Origin: Convolutriloba macropyga | Lineage: Eukaryota | Assembly: GCF_964194025.1 (NCBI RefSeq) | Contig: NC_134476.1 | Location: 52,204,001 to 52,268,000, forward strand | Reading direction: 5' to 3' | Length of the DNA stretch: 64,000 nt | Shown: one piece after another, positions 1 to 57,589 of the stretch | How positions within the stretch are numbered: the first letter of the stretch is position 1 | Layout: each line of letters begins with the position of its first letter | The notes under the pieces: generated by a model | What the model was told of the DNA's origin: nothing | Databases searched by the model: none | The model's input: only the letters and a program-made list of their open reading frames with translations | Made by a program: the position numbers and the translations under genes

Positions 1-61
1 GCATTTGATATCGGATTGAGTTTGATCTGTTCTGCACGCAAAGGTCTTCTGGCTTTGTTGT

Positions 62-3000
62 TTAGCCTTCTGAATGAATTTCTCGACATAACAAAAAATT
101 CGAACCAGTTTTGCAAACGAGGATATTCGATGAATTAGCTGAACTATAGAGTTGTTCTCCTGAGTAACAACCATTGTCGTTTGCTTCAGTGTTTCTCGTT
201 GCACTTCGTTGTTCACTCCGGATTGATGTTCCTCTATTGATTCCGCCTTCGGCCAATAATCTTTGCTTTTTTTTCTAGCCAGTGGGCTCCATTCAACCAA
301 AGGCTGTGTTTGACTAGGTTTGCGACCGAAATCCCTCGTGATGCGCCATCATCAGGATTCTCCTCCGTCGGCACAAAATTCCAATTTTCTGGATGGAATA
401 ATGTTTTGGATTTTTGCAACACGGTTGGCAACGAATGTCTTCCACTTTCTTGTAAATTCTTGCAGCCAAGCAAGTGTTACCATTGAATCTGTCCAAGCGT
501 ACACCTTTGGTGTCGGAAGACGTTGATCGCTCAAAGATGATGATACCGTTATCACCAAATTTGCTCTAAGAAGTGCTGCACAAAGTTCCAGCCGGGGAAC
601 GCACAAGCTCCTTATTGGTGCAACTCTGGTCTTTGCTGACAACATTCTTGTGTGAACCGATCGGTCGAAATATTGTCGTATATACACAACTGCTGCGTCG
701 GCTGTAGTTGATGCATCACAGAAGACGTGAAGTTCAGTGTCCGATGATGCTGGTGAGATCGAAATTACCTTCCTTGTCAGTGTAATATTTTCCAATTCCC
801 TCAGTTGAACTGTGAGTCGGCTGTACTGTTGCGGAAGACCTTTCGACAAAGCTTTGTCCCATCAAAGTCGGTTCATCCAAAGCAGTTGTACAAAAGTCTT
901 GAACTGTATTATTGTAGGTGAAAGCCATCCCAAAGGATCAAAGAGCCGGGTGACTTCCGACAGTATTTCGCGTTTTGTAGATGGTGTTTTTTTTGTCCAG
1001 TTTTGCTGTGAAACTGAAGTGGTCTGGATTTGGGTTCCACTTGACGCCTAAAGTTTTTATACTGTAGTCGTCGCTTTTAATTGTCATCTCGTCGGTAGCT
1101 TCTCGAAAGTTTGCAGGTAATCTTTCAACAAGTTCTACGTTACTTGAAGTCCATTTGGGAATCTCAAACCCTGCTTCTGAAAGAACTGCTATGGTTGGGT
1201 CCTGCAGTTTCATTGAACTTTCCAGATCGGGTGCTCCTGTCAACAAGTCGTCGACGTACATGTCTGTCCTGATTCCTAGCTCTACATTTTTGTCCGTAAC
1301 ACCTTCCGTTAAAACCTGTAATGGACGAACAGAATGGAACGCTGATGATGCTATTGCGTACGTGACACGTGTCATTCTTAATGTCTTTATATCTGTTGAG
1401 TTCGGTTCCTGTCAAAGTAGTTGATGATAGTCGTTATTTTCGGCATCCAGTTGCACTTGTTTGCACATTTTTGCAATGTCTGCTGAAAGGACAACAGGAT
1501 ACATACGGAAACGGTTCAAGATGCTGCAGAGATCTTTCTGGATCTTGGGTCTCACCATCAGTCTATCGTTCAAAGAAATTCCACTGGTAGTCTTCGCTGA
1601 ACCATCAAAGACTACACGCAGCTTCGTTGTTGTACTTGAGTCTTTGAACACACAGGGATGGCTGAGATAATAGCTTTCCTTCTTTGACAGTAGCATCTTA
1701 TTTGCGGGTACTTCCTCCATGTGTCCTAGTTTAATGAACTCCTGTATGAACTCGTTATATCGTCTGTACAGATCAGGCTGTTTTTGAAGCCTATGAAGGA
1801 GACTTCTAATTCTTCGTCGTGCTTGCTACAGAGAATCCCCATGTTCTCCAAATTCTTTCATAAAGAGCAGTTTTACGATGAAACTTCCTTCAGGCCTTCT
1901 TCTTGTGGTTGAATTTAAGTGTTCTTCACATCTTCTTTCTTCGTCGGTCAGATGTTTAGTTGCAGGCACTTCCTCAATTTCCCAAAAACGCTGTAAGTTG
2001 TCCTCAAATGATGATACAAAGCAGGTTTGCAAACTGGAAGAATTGGAAGTTTGCACGTTTTCGCGTCCGATTACTAACCAACCGTATACTGAGAGTCGAT
2101 AAGTAACGGGAATGTTTGGTTCTTTCAGTCGGTTAATTCCAACCATCAAGTCTTCTTAGTGTCCAGCTCAAATGCTGAGATCAACTTGGGTTGGTTTGTT
2201 AAAGTCGGGATCAACCAACCGTAGTTCCTTTACTGTCTCTCAATTGTCTCTGTTGATGTACCGAGAAGGTAAATCGTTTTTCATTTTTGTCAAAACTGAC
2301 GCGTCAATGATAATTTGTGCTTTGTTTTTTGGCTGAAGGCAAAGGTCAACAAATCTGCGATTAGCTGAGACTTCATTTCCTCCGAGTCCAAAAACACGAG
2401 TATTGTTCCTCTTTCTCTTTAGCTGAAGTCTTTGTACTGCAGCTTCAGTTACAAGATTATTCTGAGATGCAGAGTCCAGAATTGCTCGCAGATATACGAT
2501 TTCCCCTTTTACATTAACAGGAACAATTGCTGTCTTGAGAAAAATTTCATGTGTCTTGTCTTCATGCGTGAGAGCTGCTGTTATCTTTTGATCGATAGTT
2601 GTTTGTTCAGAATTAATGCTTGAAGCTCCAGATGTAACCTTTTCCTTTTTCCCTGCGTTGGCTTTGCGGCTTTTTCCAAACAATTTTTTCACGTGATTGA
2701 TGACTTGATGGGCATTTTTCGATGCAACAAGGTGTGATGCTTTCTTCCACATTGGCGGCATGAAGAACCTCCGCAGTTCTCTGCTCGGTGTCCTGGTCGT
2801 ACACAATTGAAACAAAGTCCTTTGATTTTGATCAGCTGGGCTCGCTCCATGACACCTAAAACTTTGAACTGCCCAAATTTGAAAGTCCGGTGTTCCTCTT
2901 CACAACATTCGCATTGCTGATTCGTTGTCGTGACATGAGTGTGAAGTTCTTTCTGTCCTTGATTTTGTTGCGAATGTGATCGCTCTTCGATATTTGATGA

Positions 3001-3956
3001 ACTGTTGCTGCTGACTCCAAGGCTTGAACACGTTCCTCCAGGAAAGTGCTTAGTTCCTGATAGCTCTATAGTCCTTTCCCTTTGAAGAAAGCTCCCAAAA
3101 CCTTCGTGTTTTGGAGGGCAGTTTTTCTGCAATCAAGTAGACAAAGAAGGGGTCCTGATGCTCAACTGGTTGTCCCATGTTCCGAAGAGAAAGTCTGTGC
3201 TCTTCCATTGTGTCGACAAGTTTTTGTAATTCCTGCGTGTTTTCAGTTGAGACTGGTCGATAGGAAACAATCCCATGGATGTGGGCTCGCAGTATCAATC
3301 TTTTGTTGTCGTATCGGTTCTGCAAAATTTTCATTGCAATATTGAAGTTGTCGTCGGTGACTGTGATTGAAGTTCGAAGCTTCTACTCAGCTTCGAAGCT
3401 TCTACTTCCACTGCTGACTTCAGGTACTGTAATCTCAAACTGTTTGTCAACTGATCGTTATCTATTACTGCTCTCTTGAAGCGATCGAAAAACGAGATCC
3501 AGTCCAAGTAGTTTCCGGAAAAACGGGGCAAATCGAGCTTCGGCAGATTAATGTTCTGCAAATTTCTCGAAATCGTGGTGTTTCCGGCTGCAAATGAGCT
3601 CTCTTGTGACAAGTTTCTAGTCTTTCGACGAACAAACCGATAAACATAGTCAATGTTTTGGCATTTCTTGTCATCGTACTCCTCTGTATCAACAATTTCA
3701 TCGTTCAAGTTGTCGGGATCATCAAAAGAGACTGAACCTTCTGGTTCTGCTCAGATAGGAAGGCCTGCTTCTTCTTCAAAAATTCAACTATCTGCTGCAG
3801 TTGGATAGGGTCGTCTTCATTGAGAAGTGTGAACGGTTTGTTCATTATGCCGTCTGCTTCATTGTAGAGGTTTGTTGCAACTCCTCCATGAGCTCCACCC
3901 GACTTTCGACGAAGTTCTAGATTTTCTGGCATATTTCTGATGTGTTGCTGTCTCAC
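62..3956 (-). pseudogene. Disrupted gag-pol polyprotein of the BEL/Pao element
   Basis: Domains are spread over many ORF fragments in different frames, separated by stops and frameshifts. Confidence 0.9.
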
Positions 3957-4490
3957 TGTTCTTTGCTTTGCTTTTGATGCTGTTCTTTAGTTGTATTCTC
4001 TGGCTGGCTATATTCTTTGTCTTTATCAATTGCTGTAAATCTTTGTGGCTAAAAACTCAGAAAACAAGTTAGAATAGCGTGAAAATCGTAAATATAGGGT
4101 TGTATCTATCCCCCCAGAAAAAGTGCGGCCAGGTTTAACGCTCGAACTTAGTCTTAGTACTTCAGGGGGCAAAGTAAGCTAACAAAAACCGAGTTTTCGA
4201 TGAGAACTAGAGAGAGAGATTGACTTCCCCTGAAGTTTTTCAAAAAATATGCAGAATCTTGAGTATACAGTTACCCCACTAGATATCCTCTACCGGGACC
4301 CTTGGTTGGGTTAATAAACCTAGTTATACAAGGTAATCATCTTGAATAACATGTGGGGGGATGATGGTATCTAGTGGGGGGTCCGCATTCAATTTCCCTT
4401 TAAGTTTCCCCTTTTTAGGATATCAGCAAATATTTGAGAGAGTGAATGCTTTGGATGCTTAATGCTTTGACTATTTTATCGTTAACCTAT

Positions 4491-4707: not shown

Positions 4708-5929
4708 GTCCGGTCAAAAATGTCAAAAAAGAATCCGGAAAGATCATACAACAAGTACGAAGGAAAAGGTATACCAAGAGACGGCCACAGAAGTTGTCAA
4801 AATGTTCGAGGAACGCAACAGGCTAAAGTTAACTGACCTTCTTCCAGAGATTGCCAGACTGAACATAGAGATAATAACAGATAGACTTAAACCATCACAG
4901 GAAAAAAGGAGGGACTTTGTCAGTGAGCTAGGTGGGTGAAAAAAGACTTCCAAACTTTTCAATGATCTGAATGCTATGAAAGGCATGAAAATTGAACTCC
5001 AACATTAACCAGGCTACTAATTGCACTGGCAAATCAATTAGTGACAACAACAAGAATGCTTAACTGTCCAATAATCAGTTCTCACAGGTCGCCAGGCAAA
5101 CTTCATCTCGGGAGTCAAGAGAAGTACATCCTAGACTCCGTAACTTGCCCGAAGCGAAATCGATTTTTTCAACGGGAAGGAAACAGAGGAAGCCATTAAT
5201 AGCTGCAAAAATCAAAACAGGATAGGTCCGGATGTCATATCCACTTCTCAAACATCTGGTTGAACTGGATATTAGCAATCTCAAAGAAGTGTTCAATGCA
5301 TGCAAGATCGCAGCTATATGGAAAACACCGACGAGATTTCTCTTACTGAAACCCGTTAAGCCTCCTAATGTTTCAAGTTTCTATAGACCGGTATCATTTA
5401 GACGGGTACTACCACTTTTAGACATCAACGAAAACTGCCCAAAATCCTCCTTTCATAATGTTGCGTCGCAACACTTATTTTTGCTAATTAGACTTGCTTT
5501 AAACGCTTTAAAGACTTAAATGCTTTATGCTTAAGAAGAACTCAAGCTCATAAGGAAACAAGTGTTTTTGATAAAATCAGATGAAATTAGCAGGCCCGCA
5601 AAAGCATCACAGAAAATCATTTTAAAAAATAGAAGGTTAAAAATTCAGACCTTTGCATCACCTGGGCTGGAATTTATGCCCCTCGTTCAAAAGCAATAGG
5701 CACAGCGTTTCGCTACCGATGTGTTTGGTTTGTGTATATAACCCCTAAGTGCCAACAATTTTTTGTCCAACGACGGTTTTGGCTTTGCCATCTTGAATAT
5801 TTAAGAAGCATTAAGACTTCTACAGACAACAAGATTATACATGGTGGCATAGCGTAACTCATGCTATACGTTAGGCTGCATGTTTAAGGAGCGTTTATAA
5901 CATGCAATGATACGGAGCTTAAACATTCG

Positions 5930-8900
5930 AAATTAAAAAAAGAAAAAGAAACGAAAGAGAAAAAAACAGAGGAAAGAGAGAAAACAAAGGCAGAAAAAAA
6001 GAACAGGAAAGAGATAAAATGAGAAAATGAGAGAATATAGAAAAAAACGGAACAGAAGAGATTACAGAGAAATGAAAGACAAAAAAGACAAATGAAAGGG
6101 GAGAAGCGAAAAAGATACGAAAAAAGAGAAAAAAAAACAGACAAAAAAGAGAGAGAAAAGAAAGAGTAAAAAAGAGAAAGAAATCGAGAAACAAATGACA
6201 GAAAAGAGTGAAAAGAAGAAGAGAAAAGCAAGAGAAAATGAAAAGCCGCAAAAAGCCGGGGAAAATGAAAGCAAAAAGCGACAAAAAGAGAAACAAAACA
6301 GAGACAGAGGAGAGAAAAGAAAGAGAAAAGGAAGATAGAGAAAGAGAAAAAACAAGAGATGAAAGAAGAAGAGAAAAAGTAAGAAACGGAAGGGAAAAGC
6401 GAGACATAAAAAAAAGACAAAGGAAAAGAGAAAAAAAGCGAAAAGAAAGATAAACGAAAGACATGACAAAAAAACAGAAAGAAGAGCAAAACATCAAGAT
6501 AGAAAGAGATGAGACAGAAAAGGCAGAAAAACGAAAGAGAAAAAAAATTGAAGAGAAAAGCAAATCAGAAAAGAAGAAGAAAAAGAGAAAGAGAGAAAGG
6601 CAAGAGAAAAATAGAGAAAAGCACAGGAGAAAAACAGAAAACAGAAATGAAAGATCGAGGAAAAATAGAGAAACGAAAGAAAAAAAGAAGGGCAAAGAAA
6701 AAGAAGAGAGAAGAAAAAGACACGAAAGAAAAAAAGCAGAAAAGAAGAACAGAAAAGAAAAAAAGAAAAGAAAGAGACAAGAAAGAACAAAATGACAGAG
6801 AGAAAAGAAAAGAACAAAGCAAGACAAAAAAGGCAGGGAGAAAAAAAGAGCGGATAGCAAAAAAAAAACAAAAAGCGAGAGACAGAAAAACAGAAAGGAA
6901 AGAGAAAAGAACAAAAAATTGAAGAAAAAAACGAAAGAGAGGAATAGAAGAGAAAAAAAGAGAGAGAAGAATGAAAAACAAATGCAAAAAAGAACAGAAA
7001 AGAAAAAGAGAAAAGAAAAGAAAAAAGGAGAAAAGGAAGAAAGAAAAGAGGAAGGCAGAAAAATGAACAGAAAAAAAAAGAAACGAACGAGAAAAGTAAG
7101 GAAAAGAAAAAAGCAAAAAAAGGGGAAAAAGACAGAAACAAAAGACAGAAAAGAGAGAAAACCCGAAAAAAAAGAAAGAAAAGCAAGAGAGAAAAGAAAG
7201 ACAGCAAAGATAGAGAAAAGCAAGAGATAGAAAAGGAGACATTTGAAAGAACGAAAAGAAAGGCAGAGAAAGAAGAAACAATATAAAAAAGAAAGGCTCA
7301 AAAGAACAGAAAGAAAGGAAAAAGAAAGACAAAAACCAAGGACAAAAAAATAAAGAGAAAAACAAGAGAGAAAAAAGGCAAAAGAACGGGAAAAGTAGAG
7401 ATAAAGAAAAAACGGAAAGGAGAGAGAAAAGAACGAATAAAAAACAAACAAACTTAAAGGAGGAACAAAAGAGAATAGGAAAGAAAGGTAGAAAATGAAC
7501 GGAAAAGAAAAACAGAGATCAGAAAGTGAAAAAGGAGAAAAAACAAAAGGGAAGAAAGGCAACAAAAGAAGAAAGGTAGAAAGGCAAAAAGGAGAAGAAC
7601 ACAAAATAAAGAGGGAAAAGAAAAGAGCAAAAAAAAAAAGAAACCAAAGACCGGAAAGAGAAAGGCCAGAGACAGAAAAACGAGAAAGAAAAGAGAGCAA
7701 AGAAAGATTAAAAAAGACAGACAAAAACGAAAGAGAAAAGAAAATGAAAATAAAGAGAAACGCAAAAGAGAAAAAAAGCAGAAAGAAGGAACAGAAAGGG
7801 ACGAGAAAAACAGCAAGCGAGAAAAGAAGAGAAAAAAAAGAAAAAAGAAAAAATGCCGAGAAACGAAAGAAAAAAAAGATAAGGACAGAAAAGAGAGAGA
7901 AAAAGAAACGATGCAGAGAAAAGAGACAGAAGCCGAATATAGAGTAGGAAGGAAGAGAAAAGGCTTAAGAAAAGTAGAAAAGAAAGAGAAAAGCGAGAAA
8001 GAAAAAACGGAAAGGAAAGCGAAAAGAACAAAATCCTAAAAGCGAAATTGAGGAACGAAAGAGAGAAGGATTAGAAAGAATAGAAGGTTAAAAAGAAAAA
8101 CTAGAAGGTTAAAAAGGAAAAAAGCAAAGAAACGAAAAAAGACAGAAAGAACAGCAAAATGAGAGAAGAAACAAAAGAGAAAAGGGAACAAAAAAGAAAG
8201 AGATAGACAGAAAGGGAATAGAAAAGAAAGCGAAAAGAAATAAAGAAGCGAAAGAGAAGAGATAGAGAAGAGAGACAGAAAGGAACGAGAAAAAGGCTAG
8301 AGATAAATTGAAAAACAGAAAACACGACAGAAAAGACAGAAACGAAAAAATACAAAGAAGATAAGGAGAGAAAAGAAAGCGAGAAACGAAAATCAGAAGA
8401 AAAAGAGGAAGAAAAAGAAAGAGAAAAACAAGAGAAAAATGGAGAGTAAAAAGACAGAAAAGAAAGAGAAAAGGAAACAATACAGAGTAAAGAGAAAAAT
8501 AAAAGATAAAGAAGAAAGAAAAGAAATAGCAGAAAAAGGCAAAAATGAGAAAAAGAGGAAAACAGAGAGGAATGCCAAAAGAACAAAATACTAAAGAAAA
8601 AATGAAAAATAATAAAAAAAAGAAAGGAAAAGAAGAAAAAACGAATAGAAAACGAAAAAAGCAAAAAACAAAGAAACAAGAGGAGAAACGCAGAAAGGAG
8701 AAGAAAAAAGGAGGAAAAAAGAAAAAAGAAAGGAAAAGAACAGAAATGAAAGCAAGAAAAGGAACAGACAAGAAAGACAACCAAAAAACAAGAAAAAGAG
8801 AAAAGGATATAAAAAGATAAACAGAAAGGAAAGAGAAACGACAGCGGAACGAAAGAGAAAAAGCGAAAGAGAGAAAATAAAGAAAAGAAATACAATGAAA

Positions 8901-9915
8901 GGAGAAAAGAAAGACAGAGAAAAAAAGACAGGGAAACCAAAGAAAGAAGACAGACAAATGAAGAGACAGCAAAAAAAAACAGGAGAGAAAGAGAGAGAGA
9001 AGGAAAATTGAGCGAAAAAACACGAAAAGACAAAAGAGAAACAAATCAGAGAATAAAAGAAAGACACGAAATTGAGAGTGAGAAAAAAAGAAAGAGATAG
9101 ACGAAAAGAAGAAAAAGAGACCAGAAAAAAAGATAGAGAAACAAGAGAGAAAAAAAAGAAACGACAGAAAAGAAAGGCAGAACAAAAGAACAGAAAAGGC
9201 AGAACAGAAAAGATAAAAAATAACAAAGAAAGACAAAAAAAGACAGAATAGAAAGAGACAACCGAGAGAGAAGAAAAAGAGAAAAAACAGAAACTGAAGA
9301 GAGGAAAGAGAGAAGAACAAAAGAGGGCATAACGAAAGACAGAAATGCAGAAAAAAACAGGAAAAAAGCGACAGAAAAAACAGAAGAGAAAAAGACAAAA
9401 GAAAGACGAAAGAAAGACAGAGAGCTAAAACATAAAAGAGAAAAGCAAGAGATAAACGAAAGAGGGAAAAGAAAGAACAGAAAAAACAGACAAAAGAACT
9501 GAAAAAAAGAATAGAAAGAGAAAAGAAAGAAACAGAAGGGAGAACAGACAGAAAAGCGAGAGATAGGAGAGACAGAAAACAGCAACAGAGAAAAGAACGA
9601 CAGAAAAGAAAGAGAAAAGCAAGAGAAAAACAGAAAGGAAAAAAAGAGAAACTAAAGAGAAGCGGAAGTAAAGAGAAGCGGAAGTAAAGAGAAGCGGAAG
9701 AGGAACGACAAAAAAATTAAGACAAATAAAAAGAACAGAAAAGAAAGAGAGAGAAAAAAGACAAAAAACAGAAAAGACCGAGAAAGCATACAGAAAAGGA
9801 AGAAAGAAAAGAAAAGCGAAAGAGGGAGAAAAAAGAGCGAAAGAGAAGCAATACAAGAAAAATTAAAACGAAAGAGAAAAGATATACAGAAAAAGGCAAT
9901 AGAAAAAAACACACA
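5930..9915. repeat. ~4-kb aperiodic purine-rich (A/G) low-complexity tract inside the Helitron
   Basis: Plus strand is almost all A and G with sparse C and very rare T; only short local repeats (AGAAGCGGAAGTAAAG about x3 near 9658-9700; TAGAAGGTTAAAAAG x2 near 8080-8116). Confidence 0.95.
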
Positions 9916-10039
9916 AAAGCTTGACCATGTTGCATCTCTTTCTAGGTGTTTTACATTTCCTTATCATTTTTGCTATCATTTAAATGGACCATTCTTCATC
10001 TTCGATTTCATTTCGATAATTGACCTTTACTTAATCTTT

Positions 10040-41820: not shown

Positions 41821-44421
41821 AAACATGATGACGATGATGAGGAAGACGAGAACGAAGATTTAAATGACGCCAACTTTGACGAGTTCGCTGGCTATGGAGG
41901 GAGTCTGTTTGGGAATGCGCCTTACGAGAAAGACGACGAGGAGGCCGATATGATTTACGAGTCAATTGACAAGCGACTGGACGAGAGACGAAAAGACAGA
42001 AGAGAGTTGAAATTTCAGGAGGAGATCCGAAAGGTAAGAGAGGAGAGGCCTAAAATTCAGCAACAGTTTTCTGATTTGAAGCGAAAATTAGCTGATGTTA
42101 GCAGTGACGAATGGCTGAACATCCCAGAAGTGGGGGATAGTAGGAACAGGAAGCAACGCAGCTTGCGAATTGAACAGATGACACCACTGCCAGACTCGGT
42201 TCTGGCCAGAGCTGCTGGGCAGGATGCGACTACTAGCTCTATTGACCCGAATGCGGGTTTGACAACTCCTGGAACCCTGTCAACGTTGGGAACATCAAGT
42301 GTAGATCTCCGAAAAGTGGGAGAAGCAAGGAACACTTTAATTGACATCAAATTGAAACAAGTCTCAGACTCTGTCACTGGACAAACTACAGTTGATCCGA
42401 AAGGTTATCTAACTGACCTGCAGTCTATGCTTCCGGCGTATGGCGGTGATATTCAAGATGTAAAGAAAGCGAGATTGTTGCTCAAATCTGTCAGAGATAC
42501 AAACCCGGGTCACGCACCTGCCTGGATCGCATCTGCCAGACTGGAAGAGGTCGTGGGAAAACTACAGGTTGCTAGAAATCTGATTATGAAGGGAACTGAA
42601 GCGTGTCCAAAAAGCGAAGATTGTTGGTTGGAGGCAATAAGGTTGCAACCTGGTGATACTGGAAAAGTTGTCGTGGCTCAAGCGGTGAGACAGTTACCTT
42701 TATCAGTTAAATTGTGGTTGAAGGCTGCCGACCTTGAAACTGACAATAAAGCTAAGAAACGAGTGTACCGAAAAGCCCTGGAACATATTCCAAATTCTGT
42801 GAAATTGTGGAAAACAGCTGTGGATTTGGAGGACGAAGATGAAGCGCGTATTATGCTTGGTCGAGCAGTTGAATGCTGTCCTCAAAGTGTTGACATGTGG
42901 CTAGCTCTTGCAAAGTTGGAAGAGTATGAAAATGCAAAAGCAGTGTTGAACAAAGCGAGGCAGAATATTCCAAATGACCGGCAAATTTGGCTAACTGCTG
43001 CAAAGCTTGAAGACACGGCTGGAAATAGAGATAACGTTGATAAGATTATCAAAAGAGCTATTGAGTCTTTACGAAGTCACAGAGTTGATGTTTCACGTGA
43101 TGAATGGTTAACTGATGCTGAAAATTGCGAGAAAGCTGGAAATATTTTAACCTGCCAAGCAATAATATCGAATGTTGTTGGAATGAACGTTGATGAGCAA
43201 GATCGAGAAGACGTATGGCTTGATGATGCTGAAACTATGACCTCTAAGGGTTCCATAGAATGTGCCCGGGCTATTTACATGCATGCATTGCATATATTCC
43301 CAAGTCATCAGAGAATATGGGAAGAGGCGGCGCATTTCGAAAGGGCGAAGGGTTCCAGAGAAACATTGGAATCTTTGTTACAACAAGCTGTTATTCATTG
43401 TCCAAAAGCGGAAGATCTGTGGCTGATGGGCGCTAAGACAAAATGGTTAGCCAATGATGTGAACGCTGCAAGGCAAATTCTAGCGCTGGCTTTTAAAGCC
43501 AACCCGAATAGTGAGAAAATCTGGCTAGCTGCTGTTAAATTGGAGAGTGAAAACGGACATTTTTCAAGAGCGAGAACTTTGCTGAAAAACGCAAGAAGCA
43601 GTTCAATGACAGCACGTGTACTTATGAAATCGATCAAGCTTGAATGGGCGTTGGGCGAAATAGACGAAGCGAAGCGGTTAGCTAAAGAAGGAATCAAAAT
43701 GTATGAAAACTTTGACAAAATGTGGATGATGCTGGGTCAACTTGAACAACTTTCAAGCAATTCAGAAGAGACCAGAAAACTTTACAATGACGGTCTCAAA
43801 AAGTGCCCGCATTCTATAACATTATGGATTTTGCTGTCAAGATTTGAAGAGAATTTGAAAAATGTAATTCGTGCTCGAGCGTTACTAGAAAAGGCTCGTT
43901 TAAAAAACCCACAAAATCCAGATTTGTGGCTGGAAGCAATAAGACTTGAATTACGTAATTGCAATCACGTTATTGGACATAATTTAATGGCGAGAGCATT
44001 GCAAGAATGTCCAACAGCCGGAAAATTATGGTCAGATGCAATTTTCATGGAAGGCAGGCCACAACGCAAATCGAAGAGTTTGGACGCCTTGAAAAAATGC
44101 GAACATGACCCTCACGTTGTGCTCAGCATCGCTTTGCTGTTCTGGTGCGACCGCAAAATACAGAAAAGCCGGGAATGGTTTGCCAGAGCGCTGAAACTGG
44201 ACTCAGATTTAGGCGACAGTTGGGCATATCTGTACAAGTTCGAGTCACAATTTGGAAAAGAGGAGACTTTGAAGGACATCGAAGCGCGTTGTGAGAAAGC
44301 AGATCCGAAGCACGGGGAGCATTGGTGTAAAGTGTCGAAAGATATTCAGAATTGGAGGAAAGATGCTATTGATGTTCTCAAGCTAGTAGCTGAAGCGCTG
44401 CCTCCTATTGAGAAGCTTTAA
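41821..44421 (+). CDS. PRPF6: PRPF6 coding exon 2, 866 aa (rest of PRP1_N and all HAT/TPR repeats)
   Basis: Open frame from the acceptor (43 codons before the ORF-track Met at 41950); motifs [72 protein letters not shown]; stop TAA at 44419-44421. Confidence 0.97.
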
Positions 44422-50330: not shown

Positions 50331-52409
50331 ACATAATTCTTTGAAGCGGAAGCAATATCTAATTTCAGATACTACTGCTAAACTTCTGGGTGGGATCCGT
50401 TAGAAAACCTCTATCGAAGTTGAACCTCCCCTAAGTGGGGCAAAACCAAGATGGTGGAAACCATGTTTGGTTTGATTTCATTTTTATTTATTTGTTTATA
50501 TGACGTTTTTTTCTATAAAGCTTACAAAAATTTCAGTTTTCCATTGATTGAGGTGTAATGCTACTTCAAGGAAATTGTTAAGATAAATTGGTTTTAAAAC
50601 AGTTCAATTTAATTTTACCTAATCAATTTGCTCCAAATTAAATCTCCGTTTTTTGGCAAAAATATATGGCCAACGTTGAAGTAATGTGGAGTTTGGGCCA
50701 TCTCCGGAGGAGCACATAAATGGCGTATAATTGAATTAATTTATCAAAAAACATTCAGTAGACGAATTAGCTGATATTACGTTGCAAAAACTACATTGGC
50801 GCCTGTAAAATTACAAGAAGACGTCACATTGCCCAAGACAACTTTTGTAGACATTTGAACAGCAATGAAATGTAGTTCAAATTTGTTTCAAATATTTAGG
50901 AACTTCTCAAGCCGACCGATTGGAAAAAAATGAATTGTTCATGATTAATTTCAGAAATGTCCCTCACAACGCTATTTAGGGATTGAAACGACAATAAGAA
51001 GTTTTGAAAGTGCTCTTATTATAGCTCAGACGAAGAATTAGGACTTTCAATTAGCTCTCAAGTTTTTACTAAAAGAATTCTAGCAATAATTTTTAGGCTG
51101 ATTGAAAGCTCAAAATTGTTATCAAAGTTACCTTATCTGTGAGTTTGGTTAACCAAATTCATGTTTTTGTGTCCTTGTTGACCATAGTTAACAAATCGGT
51201 TATTGATCGGGGACAGCAGTTAGGTAAATTGAAAATCTGTGAGGAGGTACTGTTACTGACGTCAACGAAATACAAAAACAGCCTCACAATTGCCAAATGT
51301 AGTTTTTTTAACGTAATAGCTTAGGAAAAAAGGTTTTCCATCTATTAATTTTGCTGCAAACTAATTTTTTCATCAACCAACTTGAGTTAAACTCAAGAGT
51401 TCTGTCAGTTTTTTAACTGAGTTCTCAGAGTTCTCAAGTTTATTAAGCTGTAGTTCTTTCGATTTACTTCGCCGTGATTTGCATGCGATATTAATAAACC
51501 AACCTTACTTCGTCATTGTTAATTAAATTCATAATTTTATTCGGTCTTTATTCTTCGGTTCTTTGTTTGCTAAACTAATAGTTTAATCATCTGATAACTT
51601 TGTTTTGCGGATAACTGATTTTTTAAAGACGTGATTTTTGATAATTATAAAGACAATGAACATTAAAGAAAACTGTGCACCAAACATGAGCTCTGCTGCT
51701 CGCGAAAAGAACAGGCGGAAATGTGTAGAAAATTATGAAAAAGTGGCAGCTGAGAAAAAGCTGCTGTGACTTAATGCTGTTCGTAAGACCCCCAAACGAA
51801 TCGCCATTCTGGCTGATATCAGAAGTTTAAAGCCTGCTGGTGCTATCTCTAGCTTTCAATAATTTATTTCAATCAGTCTCTTTTACAGCTATTCGCGATT
51901 TTGCAATCATATTGATTGCAAGAGATGCAAAATTATTGGCAATTATGGAACGCGAGCAAGCCTTTGAATCCTTATTTTTACCTGTTAAGAGTGGAGACTT
52001 CTTTGAAAAATATGCCACCTATTAGCTGATGAGTTTCTGATGTCTCGTCCAATGAGTGGGGAGCTCTTAATTTTCTGTTTGACCGTTTGTTTAGTAAACT
52101 AGTGGCTGGAAAAATTTGGGTGGGAGAATAGAAATTACTCCAAAGATTTTGCCAAGAATATAGCGAGCGTGATTCCAACTGATTTGAACGGAGCTGATAA
52201 TAATATCAATGATCGGTTATGACCGCTACTCTAGTTTATTGAATTGATTTCCTATTTGAATAATTGCATGCTATATTTTGCATGTATTTAACGAACGTAT
52301 ATCAAGTCACTGTTGTCGGTAATTTATTGGGCAAATTGAAAAAGAAGATCGCTCTGATCTCGTTATTTGTCCACGTTGCTTGTTCATTTACAACTATTCA
52401 ACAACGAAA

Positions 52410-52410
52410 T

Positions 52411-52446
<36 letters not shown>

Positions 52447-52447
52447 T
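52410..52447. repeat. (TTTC)n microsatellite
   Basis: About 9 units. Confidence 0.9.
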
Positions 52448-52937
52448 ATGAACCAAGATTTCATTAACTATGCTGTTCTGCAGCGATTACGTAGAAACCA
52501 AAGTCATCAATTATTTTTTCGGTAGCATAGTTACCACGACATACTTGATTAACACTATATCGCCGCAAAGTTAACGCTTACTAACCTCCTGAACTGGCGA
52601 TTATTAAATATTTTTTTCTATGAGATTAAAAATTCTTCACGATCAACTTTTTAGTATATTATTTTAAAAATGCGTTTCTTACATATAGATCCCTTAACAA
52701 TCACTAGATTGCAGGATCTTCGAAAGTTGAAATTTGGGAACATCTGTAGAGGTTTTCCTTTTCTGGTATTGACGATTCTCAGCGCAAAACAGCATTTCTT
52801 AAACACTTTTTTATGTTACTCAATAAGCTTTAGATTTTGTTTAGTCTAAGAAACCTAACAAAATGAAATCCATTCCAAATTAAATTCTATTAAAGGCAAT
52901 TCTATGCCGCAAGTTTCCAGTCAAAGTATTTTGATGC

Positions 52938-53459
52938 TCACCAAGAAGGCGGTAGTGGTGGAGGAACGCATAATCTGTTCACGTCTTTCGGTCGAGGGAA
53001 TTGGCGACAGTCAAGGGGAAATGGTAGAAAGACTTGATTCTTATGTGACGTCATAATTGCGCTGATCTCTTCAGTATACTCTCTGGCAGCTAGTCGACAT
53101 ACAGCCCTACATGGAGACACCAGCTGTACCATTGGTTCATTAAAGTTCACTGTCGCATTGAGACATACTGGTGTAAGCAACGTCCATAACAACCCAAAAT
53201 TCTTTGGCAACCCATAGCCAGTGATTTTAGCTATCTTTTTCGTTTCCTGCACGAGTATAGAAACACTTTCGATGTCGCTGAAAGCTAACTTTTCATGGAA
53301 TGTTTTGTTCCAGTTCCCAAAATCCTTTTGTCTCACATTGTTTTCGATGCATTCTCCCTGTATAGGATGGTTTGAAAATTCGAATACTGTCTGCCCATGC
53401 GATGTATTGAACAAAATCATATACAAGAGAATGACGAAACTGATCAGCTGTTTCAACAT
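52938..53459 (-). CDS. Signal peptide + divergent Frizzled-type CRD (6 cysteines); a complete 173-aa secreted protein or the first exon of a longer gene
   Basis: Hydrophobic N-terminus LISFVILLYMILF; CRD hallmarks GEC, WNKT sequon, TPVC, PCRAVC, LDCRQFP, RLC; the stop TGA overlaps a plausible donor TG|GTGAGC (exon end 52942). Confidence 0.8.
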   Translation of the reverse strand: MLKQLISFVILLYMILFNTSHGQTVFEFSNHPIQGECIENNVRQKDFGNWNKTFHEKLAFSDIESVSILVQETKKIAKITGYGLPKNFGLLWTLLTPVCLNATVNFNEPMVQLVSPCRAVCRLAAREYTEEISAIMTSHKNQVFLPFPLDCRQFPRPKDVNRLCVPPPLPPSW

Positions 53460-56400
53460 TACAGCAGACTTTGCAGAATAAATCTTCTTGTTTAATATTA
53501 TAATAATCTACTATCTTACAACTAAAACTGACAAAGGAGAATTTATTTATTAATGTACATAGTTGGGGGGGTTCGGGTTTGTCGAATCAAGAAACCAGAC
53601 AGCCCCAACAATGAAAGTTTGCTCTAGGACTGTATTAGTCTGTACGGTATTATCTCTTCTTCTTTTTTGTGAGCCATATTATTAGCTATAAATTAACGAA
53701 AACATGAGCCCTGACCCGGGTTCTGTTGTTCTGTTTTTTGCACGCAGTGCTTTTATTTGTATTATATTTTAATCAGAAGTGGGGGATCAGAATTGAGGGG
53801 AGGATCAGAAAAAAATCAAAAGTAATTCAGGTGAGTTAGAAAAGTGCATTTTCTAACTGGTATGGGCCTGAGAAAAAGTAGATTCAAGCACACCATTATG
53901 ACTGCCGTGCCTGTGTTTCATTGATAGGCTGAATTATCATGTGTTCTGTTATACTTCTGACATTTGCGTAGTCACCTGCTTAATACAAACAATCTGGAAT
54001 CGATGTTTTGGGAATTCTATTCAAGTAAGGGTGACAATTATTTACTTTCCAAGGACGCTTCAAAAATTTTTTGATAACATTTTAATGAAAGGATTCGCAA
54101 ATCACTTCATACAGACCAATTCATAACAACACTCAAGTTACTTGAAATTGAAAAATAGGGATTAAGTTTCGTGCAACGTAGAAATTTTGTGCAACGTGCA
54201 AAGTGCACGAGCAAGAACGGGTCTAACCAAAATAGGAATTTGTACCAAGTACGAAGTAAAAATTTAACCAAAAAAGCAAGTGTAATTTGATCCTGGGTTT
54301 CAAAGTAGGTCATAGCGAAAGATCAAGAGTTGAGCACAATTTCAAAAATATTGTTTCGTTTGAGCGCATCTGTAGGAAACTGTCAACAATAGCAGGTTGA
54401 AGCTTTGCATAATTATAGCCAATTTACCAGGCTACAAATTTTGGGGACGTGAGTTTCCAAATTGAATTCATAGTTTGAGTTATTAACAAAAACTGTATAA
54501 AAATAATTATTTCAAAGTTGAACGTTTAGTTATTGGAACTAAATTAGAATCAAGTGATGCAACGGTATTCTAAGGTTCACAGCCGTTGCCACTTTTCCGA
54601 ATTTTGATATTTTCAAGACTTCTATAAACTTTTCTAAATTTTTGGCACGTCTTTTTTTTCTCATATAATTAGCAATTTTTATGCATAATTCTTCAATTCC
54701 CTTTCACAATTTTTTTTCTGGACGTTCATCGTTTTTTCCGAATAATTTTTTCAACTTGAACAAAATGAGCAATCAAATCATTTTTCATTCTCTTGAAAAA
54801 TCTGCTTAAAAATATATAACGAAACGCACATGTTTTTGTGTGCAGCAGAATGCTCTCACAATCAAATTTGGTAACTTGACTTGCATCGTTTTAAGAACTT
54901 TTTAAAAAACAACTTTTTCAATTATGCAATTTTTGGAGACACTGTGAGCTTCTGAGCTTCTCTAAAAAAGAGTCCTTTGGTTTTTCAGGCAAGAAAAGTC
55001 AAGCCGGAAGGACAATGAACTTCAGGAACTTAAAAATTATCTCTGTTTCGAAACAGCAACCTTTTTTTCGATAATTGTTTAAGTTGTTAGGAACTTATGC
55101 ATGCGCAATTTTTTCTAGTTTTACATTTTTTTATTGTGTCGGTTAACGGTTAGAACCAAGATCGACAAATGTAATCTTATCACAAGAAATTGCCATCATC
55201 AGAGTTTTTTGTGCATTTTGTGAATTTTCTATTTTGGAAAGGCACTGAAAATTTCATGATTAAAATGTGTTATTGAGTTTTTGCGTTTGCTCACTTTAAC
55301 AACCATGTTTCCGGTTTTGCTCTCCTTACTGTTAAAGAAAACAAATGTTTTTTCTTTGCTTTCCTTTTGTTCAAAAGTCCATTTTGCCATCTCAAAGCAA
55401 TTTTTTGTATCGATGTTTTTTTGCCCAATTTCACACAAAAATTTGAAATAATTTTTATTGAGATTAAGTTAACTCATAGCGCTTTTTTTGTATTGCCCAA
55501 GCTATTGGATAAAACAGATTTAAAAGTGTATTGTTTCTCTGACTTCCAGTTGAGCGTTGAAAGCCTCATATTTTCCTTTCTTTTTGAGAAAGAAAACATA
55601 GATTCTATGAAGAAACCTGTTTTGAAAAATTTCATAATAATTTCCTAAGAATCTTAAGTTCGGCATTTTTAAGAATTAAGTATTAAAGATGTCGTTTTTT
55701 CCTCTTTGAAAAACTGACCTCAAAATTTTCCCGGACGAATTTAAGTCTTTTGTTAACCTTTTTGGGTTAAGATGCAAAAAATGAAATTTCAAATAATTGA
55801 AAATTCACAAATCTTTGCATAGCATTGGTTAACAATTCTTTGCTCAAATTTGAGGAGCTTACTCGAACGCAAAAATGTATACCTGTTTCTTTGTTATTCT
55901 AGCAACTTTTATTTTTTTTAGAAAGAATATAGACGAGAGTAATATGACGACAGTGCCCAAAAAGGCCACTGTCATTACGTTTGCTACTGAGATAGTAGAT
56001 ATTTGTTGTGTTTTTCGTCAGGTGTCAAAAATGTTCAAAAATTGCTGAAAATCTGTGCCGAAAATTTTTTTCTAATGGATTTGAACTCTAGATGGAGAGT
56101 TTCAAATATTCTCAATCGATCTCTTAACATGTTTCAATATCAAAATAGCCTAGATCTCAGTGTAATCAACAATTGAGTAAGACATTACAAGATATAGTTT
56201 CACAAAATTCTTGTGTAAACCTCTGGTTTTTAGTTGGTTGCAATTTGTAAAGCCAGACAAAGTTCTTATTTTTGCACGTTTGATTGCTTGTTGTCATTTA
56301 AAAACCCCAAGGGTGTCGGTTTTTTTCAACCATGTTTATCGACAAAGTTTTCCGAAATCGAAATAGTGCGTCAAAAAAGTGATATTTGAAAAATTTAATA

Positions 56401-57589
56401 GTCGTTCCAGAAGATTTGCGCTCCCCATCTCAGCTCATTGGGTAAAAAACTGCAGTTCAAAGAACAAAGTGGCTTATTTGATAAATAAAACCCACAATGA
56501 GAATAAAAAATAAAGTTTCTCGAGATTCTTATTTTGATTTTTGTTGCTCTCCTTATAACTGGGAGTTCAAAAAGATATTGTTTATATTAAAATAGAGACA
56601 GAAAGTTGGAAAAAGACTGTGATTCAGAATAAAAAGAACAATTGCCATTAACTCATTTTTCAAAATTCGGCTACTTCTTTATTGATATTAAAAAAATAAC
56701 ACAATGAACTAATAAACAACAAATAAACATGTGCTATACTAAAAAACTAATAAAACTCAAATAATGAGCAAATGCAATAATGAAATAAGTTGGAAGACAA
56801 CACCTTTTGACAAGCCAATTTAGATCTAGAGTGAGGTTAGGATGAGAACTGTTAAGTCAGACCCGTATAAGGTCGTCTGATTCGCCAAATCGTATAACCC
56901 TCCAAACTAAGCACATTAATAACTATAGATTCTCCTTTGAAGGTTGCAGCATTAATACACTAGCTTTTGATATTGAGCTAGCAGAGTTTAAGCTACAAAA
57001 TGGCTCTCAATGCTTAAACAACCAACTGATTACCATTCTGATAACAACGCTTTCAGTCTTTTCATGAAACGAACAGACATTACTGAAACTGTCACCAAAC
57101 CCTATATTTGGAAATTGTACTGACCATGATAAACTGAAGCTAAATTTTCCATCAAAACATCAATATTGAAAACAATGTTTTACTGACAGAAGAAGCTAAC
57201 AAATTTGCCAAAATCACCGGTTACGAGTTACTAAAAATTTGTCTGTTTTTCAGCAACTTGAGTTCGCCTGTATGTATCGATGCAAGTTACAATGGTTCCG
57301 AAACAATGGTTCAATTTGTGCTTCCGTGTGGGGCAGTATGTTGACTTGCTGCTTACATTTAACTACGTTATGTTCTTTGTTTTGTTTGGAGAGAGTTTTA
57401 GGGCGCAGTTTTTACCGTTTGTTTGGACTCATTTTTCCTATAGTTGTTTGTTTCTAACTCCGCCGTAACTAGTCCCCATCCCGAATGAGAAAAGAGGAGG
57501 AAAGCACCTCCAGTAAATACAGGAAAATTTTAATCATCTTTAGAACATTTTTCGATATTTTTTTATCATCATAATCCAAGAAAATGGCG

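Follow-up and report, generated by a model that had tools for sequence, protein, structure and literature searches.

Known Frizzled-type CRDs and the acoel locus

The Frizzled-type (Fz) CRD is the Wnt- or lipid-binding module of Frizzled, sFRP, ROR, MuSK and Smoothened proteins, and its ten cysteines, which pair 1-5, 2-4, 3-8, 6-10 and 7-9 into five disulfide bonds, are deemed to define it. In sFRP1-5 and in Sizzled/Crescent a signal peptide precedes such a domain in a secreted protein, and the sFRPs continue beyond a CRD with all ten cysteines into a C-terminal NTR domain. Flatworms possess "sfrp-like" genes for secreted Fz-related proteins, lineage-specific and very divergent, beside canonical Wnt machinery. 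Acoels, which are not flatworms, serve in studies of whole-body regeneration and of early bilaterian evolution, for which extracellular Wnt modulators are relevant.

The DNA analysed here (the window) is a 64,000-nucleotide stretch of the genome of the acoel Convolutriloba macropyga (contig NC_134476.1, positions 52,204,001 to 52,268,000 of the forward strand). It carries on its reverse strand, at 52938..53459, a gene referred to below as gene A, which is a reduced-disulfide newcomer in a known superfamily and overturns nothing known about it. In our reading, to which we give a probability of roughly 0.7, gene A has no introns, is functional and encodes a secreted, single, divergent Fz-type CRD that has lost two disulfide pairs in steps.

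Measured against Frizzled CRDs of the FZD5/7/8 type, the domain has a common predicted fold and a common register (VIA Z 7-8, hhalign 99.1%), with C1, C5, C6, C7, C9 and C10, the basic residue after C6, the proline at C9+4 and an NxT sequon after the first helix-loop all shared. It differs from a Frizzled receptor in having no 7TM region, no linker and neither the C2-C4 nor the C3-C8 pair, and from a Frizzled CRD in a longer C5-C6 beta-hairpin and an 8-residue insertion before C4. With sFRP1-5 and Sizzled/Crescent it shares the predicted order of signal peptide and Fz-type CRD in a secreted product, and the CRDs of sFRP3 and Sizzled match the gene A model structurally (Z 7.1 and 5.8, respectively). 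A role as soluble extracellular binder is plausibly shared with the sFRPs, whereas their NTR domain and full set of cysteines have no counterpart in gene A, whose stop codon follows C10 by nine residues. The flatworm "sfrp-like" genes resemble the acoel family by description, but the latter is far more expanded (about 25-30 loci) and shows stepwise loss of disulfides. The architecture of gene A recurs in three C. macropyga proteins, XP_075258169 ("frizzled-5-like", 176 aa), XP_075258621 (215 aa) and XP_075259209 (175 aa), which stop shortly after C10-VPP and share PPCRSLC and FPRPKDVN..CVPP with the gene A family; they are only 20-29% identical to gene A, however, retain 8-10 cysteines in the mature domain, are encoded by 2-3 exons on chromosome 12, and none is of the six-cysteine type.

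Sequence features of gene A

The coding sequence, taken from the ORF list and the sequence itself, is a complete single exon of 173 codons plus TGA within a 189-codon stop-free run, for which the local base composition gives a chance probability of about 5e-7. A hydrophobic segment spanning residues 5-17 (mean Kyte-Doolittle 2.9) precedes SHG|Q, and on this basis a signal peptide is predicted at residues 1-22 (53394..53459, reverse strand) with cleavage after SHG; the segment is helical in the AF2 model. The rest of the protein reads as free of further hydrophobic stretches and hence of a membrane anchor. Six cysteines are present, at positions 37, 99, 117, 121, 151 and 164, together with two N-x-S/T sequons, N51 (NKT) and N101 (NAT), and the Fz-type CRD runs from C1 (Cys37) to C10 (Cys164) at 52968..53351 on the reverse strand according to hhalign, AF2 and Foldseek/VIA. 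An intact frame with a signal peptide and six cysteines, as described in the first-pass annotation, is thus borne out. The mature protein would comprise about 151 residues, probably N-glycosylated, with one Fz-type CRD and nothing else. A pattern scan places a TATAA motif 43 nt 5' of the ATG (53498..53502, reverse strand), a weak signal in AT-rich DNA.

The paralog family and its history

Genome searches with the gene A protein and the family profile returned 43-52 exon-level matches, and the family of secreted CRD-only proteins, which is lineage-specific, amounts to roughly 25-30 loci in the C. macropyga genome. The first-pass annotation had proposed searching the genome for a paralog with the same six-cysteine pattern, and there is one: gene B (C9:52269243-52269761, forward strand, 172 aa), an intact tandem neighbour located 1.2 kb past the end of the window, 50% identical to gene A, with the same six cysteines, Ser at C4 and Phe at C8. 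Eight cysteines are found in two older single-exon paralogs (C9:43.85 Mb and C9:52.00 Mb), which keep C1-x6-C2 and C4 and miss only C3 and C8, and in a paralog on genome sequence C10, where their even arrangement is a different one. The C8 position is occupied by Tyr or Phe in gene B, in the four other own-genome paralogs aligned and in several further members, and also in members from other assemblies and in RefSeq XP_075259209, which is encoded on C12 with 100% identity. Two copies are likely damaged: in the one at C9:50.92 Mb a stop separates the first part from the second, and its near-duplicate at C9:51.23 Mb has no start before the signal peptide and an odd number of cysteines, nine.

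Closer to gene A, an own-genome protein search identified an inverted, degenerate paralog fragment at 57138..57356 on the forward strand of the window, a pseudogene piece corresponding to residues ~51-126 (E 7.6e-10, 47% identity) with one TGA and one TAA inside. Further dead fragments with in-frame stops lie at C9:52277547-52277723 and C9:52280203-52280376, and the three around the intact genes A and B form a small birth-and-death cluster. Two-exon CRD-only members, the annotated LOC142351033 among them, form a large tandem cluster at C12:17130000-17290000, where last-exon matches recur at an exact spacing of 2,064 bp (17154785, 17156849, 17158913); more members are located on C12 at 19.6, 24.8, 33.2, 36.06 and 38.6 Mb, on C3 at 7.6 Mb and on C22.

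ML phylogeny sets the divergent CRD-only proteins apart from canonical Fz/sFRP-type CRDs (support 93/68) and joins genes A and B as a clade (100/99) whose long stem measures 1.29 substitutions per site. When 1.84 billion representatives were searched exhaustively with the family profile, 69 proteins matched, none of which has the six-cysteine pattern beyond A and B; in a word-based protein search the two genes were the sole matches. The short matches (113-215 aa) consist of a signal peptide, one CRD with PPCRSLC and FPRPKDVN..CVPP, and then a stop, and gene A follows the same plan of signal peptide, single CRD and a stop within about 10 residues past C10. All named short matches are from C. 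macropyga and the others from ENA assemblies, at least one of which represents a close relative (PRPF6 95% identical). The long matches are multi-domain proteins; examples are a shrimp protein of 1,834 aa and an octocoral protein of 1,442 aa, in the latter of which Pfam recognises ten canonical Fz domains. No ortholog of A or B was found in the related assemblies, including the 10 kb around PRPF6 in assembly ERZ25878734, and a literature search turned up no paper on CRD-only Fz proteins of acoels.

Cysteine pattern and proposed stepwise loss of disulfides

The ten-cysteine definition of the Fz domain does not hold for gene A, which has six. Alignments within the family and with canonical domains (MAFFT) agree with hhalign that these are C1, C5, C6, C7, C9 and C10, the assignment originally proposed from spacing, and equally that Trp92 (53184..53186, reverse strand) occupies the C4 position as W-x6-C5 and Tyr128 (53076..53078, reverse strand) the C8 position as C7-x6-Y, that is, C7+7. 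The N-x-T sequon, considered retained from the outset, is confirmed by hhalign, which aligns NKT with the canonical YNxT. Two of the original assignments have to be revised: C3, given as Tyr or Gly, corresponds to Lys75 by hhalign, upstream of the 8-residue insertion, and C2, given as Lys, falls in a segment of about 9 residues that is deleted from genes A and B relative to the paralogs that keep C2. Two further hallmarks of the Fz CRD, a basic residue after C6 and a proline four residues after C9 (PMC6386478), are present as Arg118 after Cys117 and Pro155 at Cys151+4.

Given the textbook pairing, the absence of C2-C4 and C3-C8 removes two whole bonds and leaves no odd cysteine, and we infer canonical bonding for the three pairs that remain, C1-C5, C6-C10 and C7-C9. 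The suggestion that loss went by whole pairs, leaving an even set, gains from the eight-cysteine paralogs without C3 and C8 only, which are the intermediates it would call for; since these paralogs retain the C2-C4 pair and Tyr occurs at C8 throughout the family, the bonds appear to have been lost pair by pair. The C3-C8 pair would have disappeared early in the family, with Tyr (or Phe) at C8 ever since, and the C2-C4 pair on the long stem of genes A and B, before their tandem duplication, through the deletion of about nine residues at C2 and the change of C4 to Trp in gene A or Ser in gene B. In the gene A fold, aromatic or aliphatic side chains may take the place of the lost disulfides.

Extent of the gene product

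An exon-wise search for Frizzled 7TM (PF01534) across the genome gave no match on C9, the chromosome of gene A; eight matches above the cut-off are spread over sequences C11, C4, C7, C12 and C16 and the unplaced contig C473, while C1, C473 and C12 carry three weaker ones. The NTR domain (PF01759) had no match at E<=1 in an exon-wise search of the whole genome. Gene A accordingly lacks the 7TM region downstream of the CRD that characterises class F GPCRs; of the sFRP features it has, by sequence reading, the signal peptide without membrane anchor but not the NTR domain. The statement in the first-pass annotation that no 7TM or netrin exon lies nearby therefore stands, and can be extended to C9 for the former and to the genome for the latter. 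At the level of the genome, the lack of any NTR match contrasts with the presence of Frizzled 7TM at six loci and of Wnt at three or more; a canonical sFRP is possibly absent, or so divided by introns that it escapes such a search.

The frame of gene A could nevertheless be a first exon, with GTGAGC (52936..52941, reverse strand), which overlaps the last sense codon and the stop, acting as a real phase-2 donor and one or more downstream exons adding a tail or a domain. The motif has the form of a good donor and recurs at the identical position of gene B, where GTAAGC again overlaps the stop, and one further paralog has GTAAAT; introns are present in other family members, on chromosome 12, and the nearest AATAAA is 612 nt past the stop. 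We nonetheless regard a longer gene as unlikely. GT[AG]AG always contains TAA or TGA, so the overlap with a stop is possibly due to chance, and a tblastx comparison of the 8.5 kb downstream of gene A with the 8 kb downstream of gene B revealed nothing conserved beyond the CRD exon. The more distant single-exon paralogs close 2-9 residues past C10 with ordinary stops and no GT, the RefSeq-annotated relatives from the same genome (171-215 aa) terminate at the same point of the domain, just after C10, and the neighbourhood contains no 7TM or NTR match. Judged from these sequence comparisons, a CRD-only product, as first suggested, is quite probable. The sequencing runs that match gene A are of DNA type only, an outcome identical to that for the housekeeping control PRPF6 and therefore no argument for or against expression. 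A joint between 52516 and 52620 near the gene was considered as splicing and rejected, being a DNA indel that the second assembly described below shares.

Selection versus decay

The syntenic 20 kb of a second public assembly (ENA ERZ25071359) served as the comparison locus; it is 93-97% identical to the window around genes and 80-88% identical between them. The published heterozygosity of C. macropyga is 3.65% (PMC13650328), and because the flanks of gene A diverge to an equal degree (3.3%), the second assembly most likely represents another haplotype or individual. It is thus probably conspecific, so that the selection test on gene A spans recent time only. Within that span, the coding sequence shows two differences in 522 positions (one synonymous and one G83E) and no indels, whereas the flanks differ at 100 of 3005 positions and contain 150 gap columns (Fisher p 2.5e-5); coding divergence is thus roughly 9-fold lower (0.38% versus 3.3%), and conservation in the 300 nt preceding the ATG exceeds that of the farther flanks. 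Contigs of three DNA samples contain G83E, at 53212, as the single coding variant of gene A, while nine SNPs and one indel occur in the 1,120 bases beside it in the same contig. The six cysteines are invariant across all copies seen.

Gene B is less constrained, with 13 coding differences in 519 positions versus 99 in 1727 in its flanks and an allelic dN/dS of 0.62. Between genes A and B, dN is 0.37 and dS 0.90 (Nei-Gojobori), giving an omega of about 0.4; in older paralog comparisons dS is saturated and dN/dS unusable. Together with the long stem, this omega shows fast long-term evolution.

The competing view, namely that gene A is a recently relaxed, decaying duplicate whose cysteine losses were neutral and whose frame has not yet been hit, was already attached to the first-pass annotation as a caveat, since a single base change turns a Cys codon into one for Trp or Tyr. 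The three dead fragments in the local cluster, the long branch of A and B and the weaker constraint on gene B also speak for it. It is countered, however, by the contrast between coding and flanking sequence given above, indels included, and by the nearby dead fragment at 57138-57356, which is about 88% identical between the assemblies and thus about 12% diverged. Genes A and B are both intact and retain all six cysteines at 50% identity, Tyr at C8 is old and family-wide rather than recent, cysteines were lost in pairs only, and the AF2 model is confident. We consider such decay very unlikely. Gene A appears instead to be under purifying selection, though fast-evolving in the long term, and the earlier proposal of a gene maintained by selection is strengthened by its low coding divergence and by the preservation of the six cysteines in gene B.

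Homology and predicted fold

Single-sequence searches detect the relationship faintly. The proposed check with the Pfam Fz model (PF01392) did yield a match, restricted to the C-terminal half, but at E 0.012 and 16.6 bits it remains below the gathering threshold of 32.1 bits; paralogs of gene A score 21.7-28.9 bits, and one family member with ten cysteines passes at 53.9 bits. A sequence search of the PDB gave a single weak match, to FZD10 (E 0.087). Profile-profile comparison by hhalign, in which a six-member family alignment was set against nine canonical Fz CRDs, including two Frizzled receptors from the same genome, returned a probability of 99.1% and E 1.5e-18 over 105 columns, with the cysteines, the NxT sequon, PPCR(S/A)LC and the C9-x3-P motif in shared register, and a search with the family profile also recovers canonical Fz proteins.

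The AF2 model built on a 36-sequence alignment is confident (pLDDT 87.2, pTM 0.81), whereas an earlier one from six sequences reached a pLDDT of 70.8 and gave weaker matches. By its structural matches the model belongs to the Fz CRD fold, which is mainly helical with an N-terminal beta-hairpin. For the 36-sequence model, the best 50 Foldseek matches in the PDB are exclusively Fz-type CRDs, among them FZD2/4/5/7/8/10, sFRP3, MuSK and ROR2 (best E 4.6e-4, target-normalised TM about 0.5). The VIA comparison is led by the FZD7 CRD (Z 8.0, rmsd 4.3 A, 104 of 118 residues), and the suggested overlay on Frizzled and Smoothened ranks Frizzled CRDs (Z 7-8) above Smoothened CRDs (Z 4-5); in the VIA table for the six-sequence model, the first rows outside Fz-type CRDs have Z <=3.5. 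The TM and rmsd values are modest, and the modelled domain is best described as a remodelled member of the Fz fold rather than a close copy. That gene A encodes an unrelated, cysteine-poor helical secreted domain with a superficial likeness to the Frizzled CRD is scarcely credible: the low Pfam score, the TM near 0.5 with an rmsd above 4 A despite a confident model, and a VIA Z of 8 that is "middling" on the tool's own scale are outweighed by the profile-profile probability with motifs in register, the purely Fz-type composition of the best 50 structural matches, the drop to Z <=3.5 for other rows with the first model, the ten-cysteine relative recognised by Pfam and the canonical proteins recovered by the profile search. 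The Frizzled-type identity put forward by the first-pass annotation is upheld by the profile-profile and structural comparisons alike.

Possible ligand and wider meaning

In soluble, extracellular form the gene A protein would bind a hydrophobic or lipidated ligand. By analogy with the CRDs of FZD and sFRP, Wnt is the first candidate and the most obvious one, with the protein serving as an sFRP-like decoy or carrier. The gene A stretches aligned by hhalign with the canonical QFWPLV and YGFxWP segments, which we take to line the Wnt lipid groove in the FZD8-Wnt8 structure, are not conserved, and fast evolution with lineage-specific expansion fits a changed ligand just as well; we would give a Wnt and a non-Wnt ligand about equal weight. 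A complex prediction for mature gene A with the single-exon Wnt encoded at C7:41.55 Mb of the same genome scored 0.02, a value obtained with no alignments and a poorly folded partner, and it speaks neither for nor against binding.

A more far-reaching scenario is that of a private acoel radiation of CRD-only proteins, in which pairwise shedding led to a minimal three-disulfide scaffold and genes A and B were re-targeted from Wnt to another ligand of hydrophobic or lipidated nature, perhaps with a part in algal symbiosis, regeneration or surface secretions. Taken as a whole, this scenario seems rather unlikely to us; if true, the A/B pair would offer a natural example of how far an Fz CRD can be stripped and re-targeted.

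Under the preferred reading of a functional, secreted single CRD, gene A represents a naturally selected version of the Fz CRD whose fold is predicted to be kept on three disulfides. Together with the eight-cysteine intermediates it provides, within one genome, a series for testing which disulfides the fold needs and how the lipid groove changes upon their loss. The analysis also flags an expanded, unstudied acoel family of secreted CRD-only proteins.

Neighbouring sequence

A short high-copy repeat (window 52288-52484), with a contig depth about 50-fold above that of its neighbours, lies about 450-650 bp downstream of the gene A stop, and beside it is a 103-bp indel polymorphism (52516-52620) that the second assembly shares with all four DNA runs. 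PRPF6 (41821-44418, forward strand) is one open frame of 866 codons, essentially intronless, and at most 65% identical to named non-acoel proteins; the related assembly ENA ERZ25878734 has three copies of it in tandem, spaced at about 6.6 kb. Retrotransposon remains with broken frames, in which gag-like zinc-knuckle, RT/RNase H-like and integrase-like segments can be recognised by eye, occupy window positions 1-4000 on the reverse strand. Some 4 kb of purine/pyrimidine-biased simple sequence (5887-9960) contain stop-free frames of up to 681 codons, rich in F/S/L or in K/E/R, and most likely represent low-complexity DNA rather than a gene. Outside the window, the Wnt gene at C7:41548927-41549844 (reverse strand) consists of a single 425-codon ORF with the acylation motif C-x-C-x-G-x-S-G-S-C.
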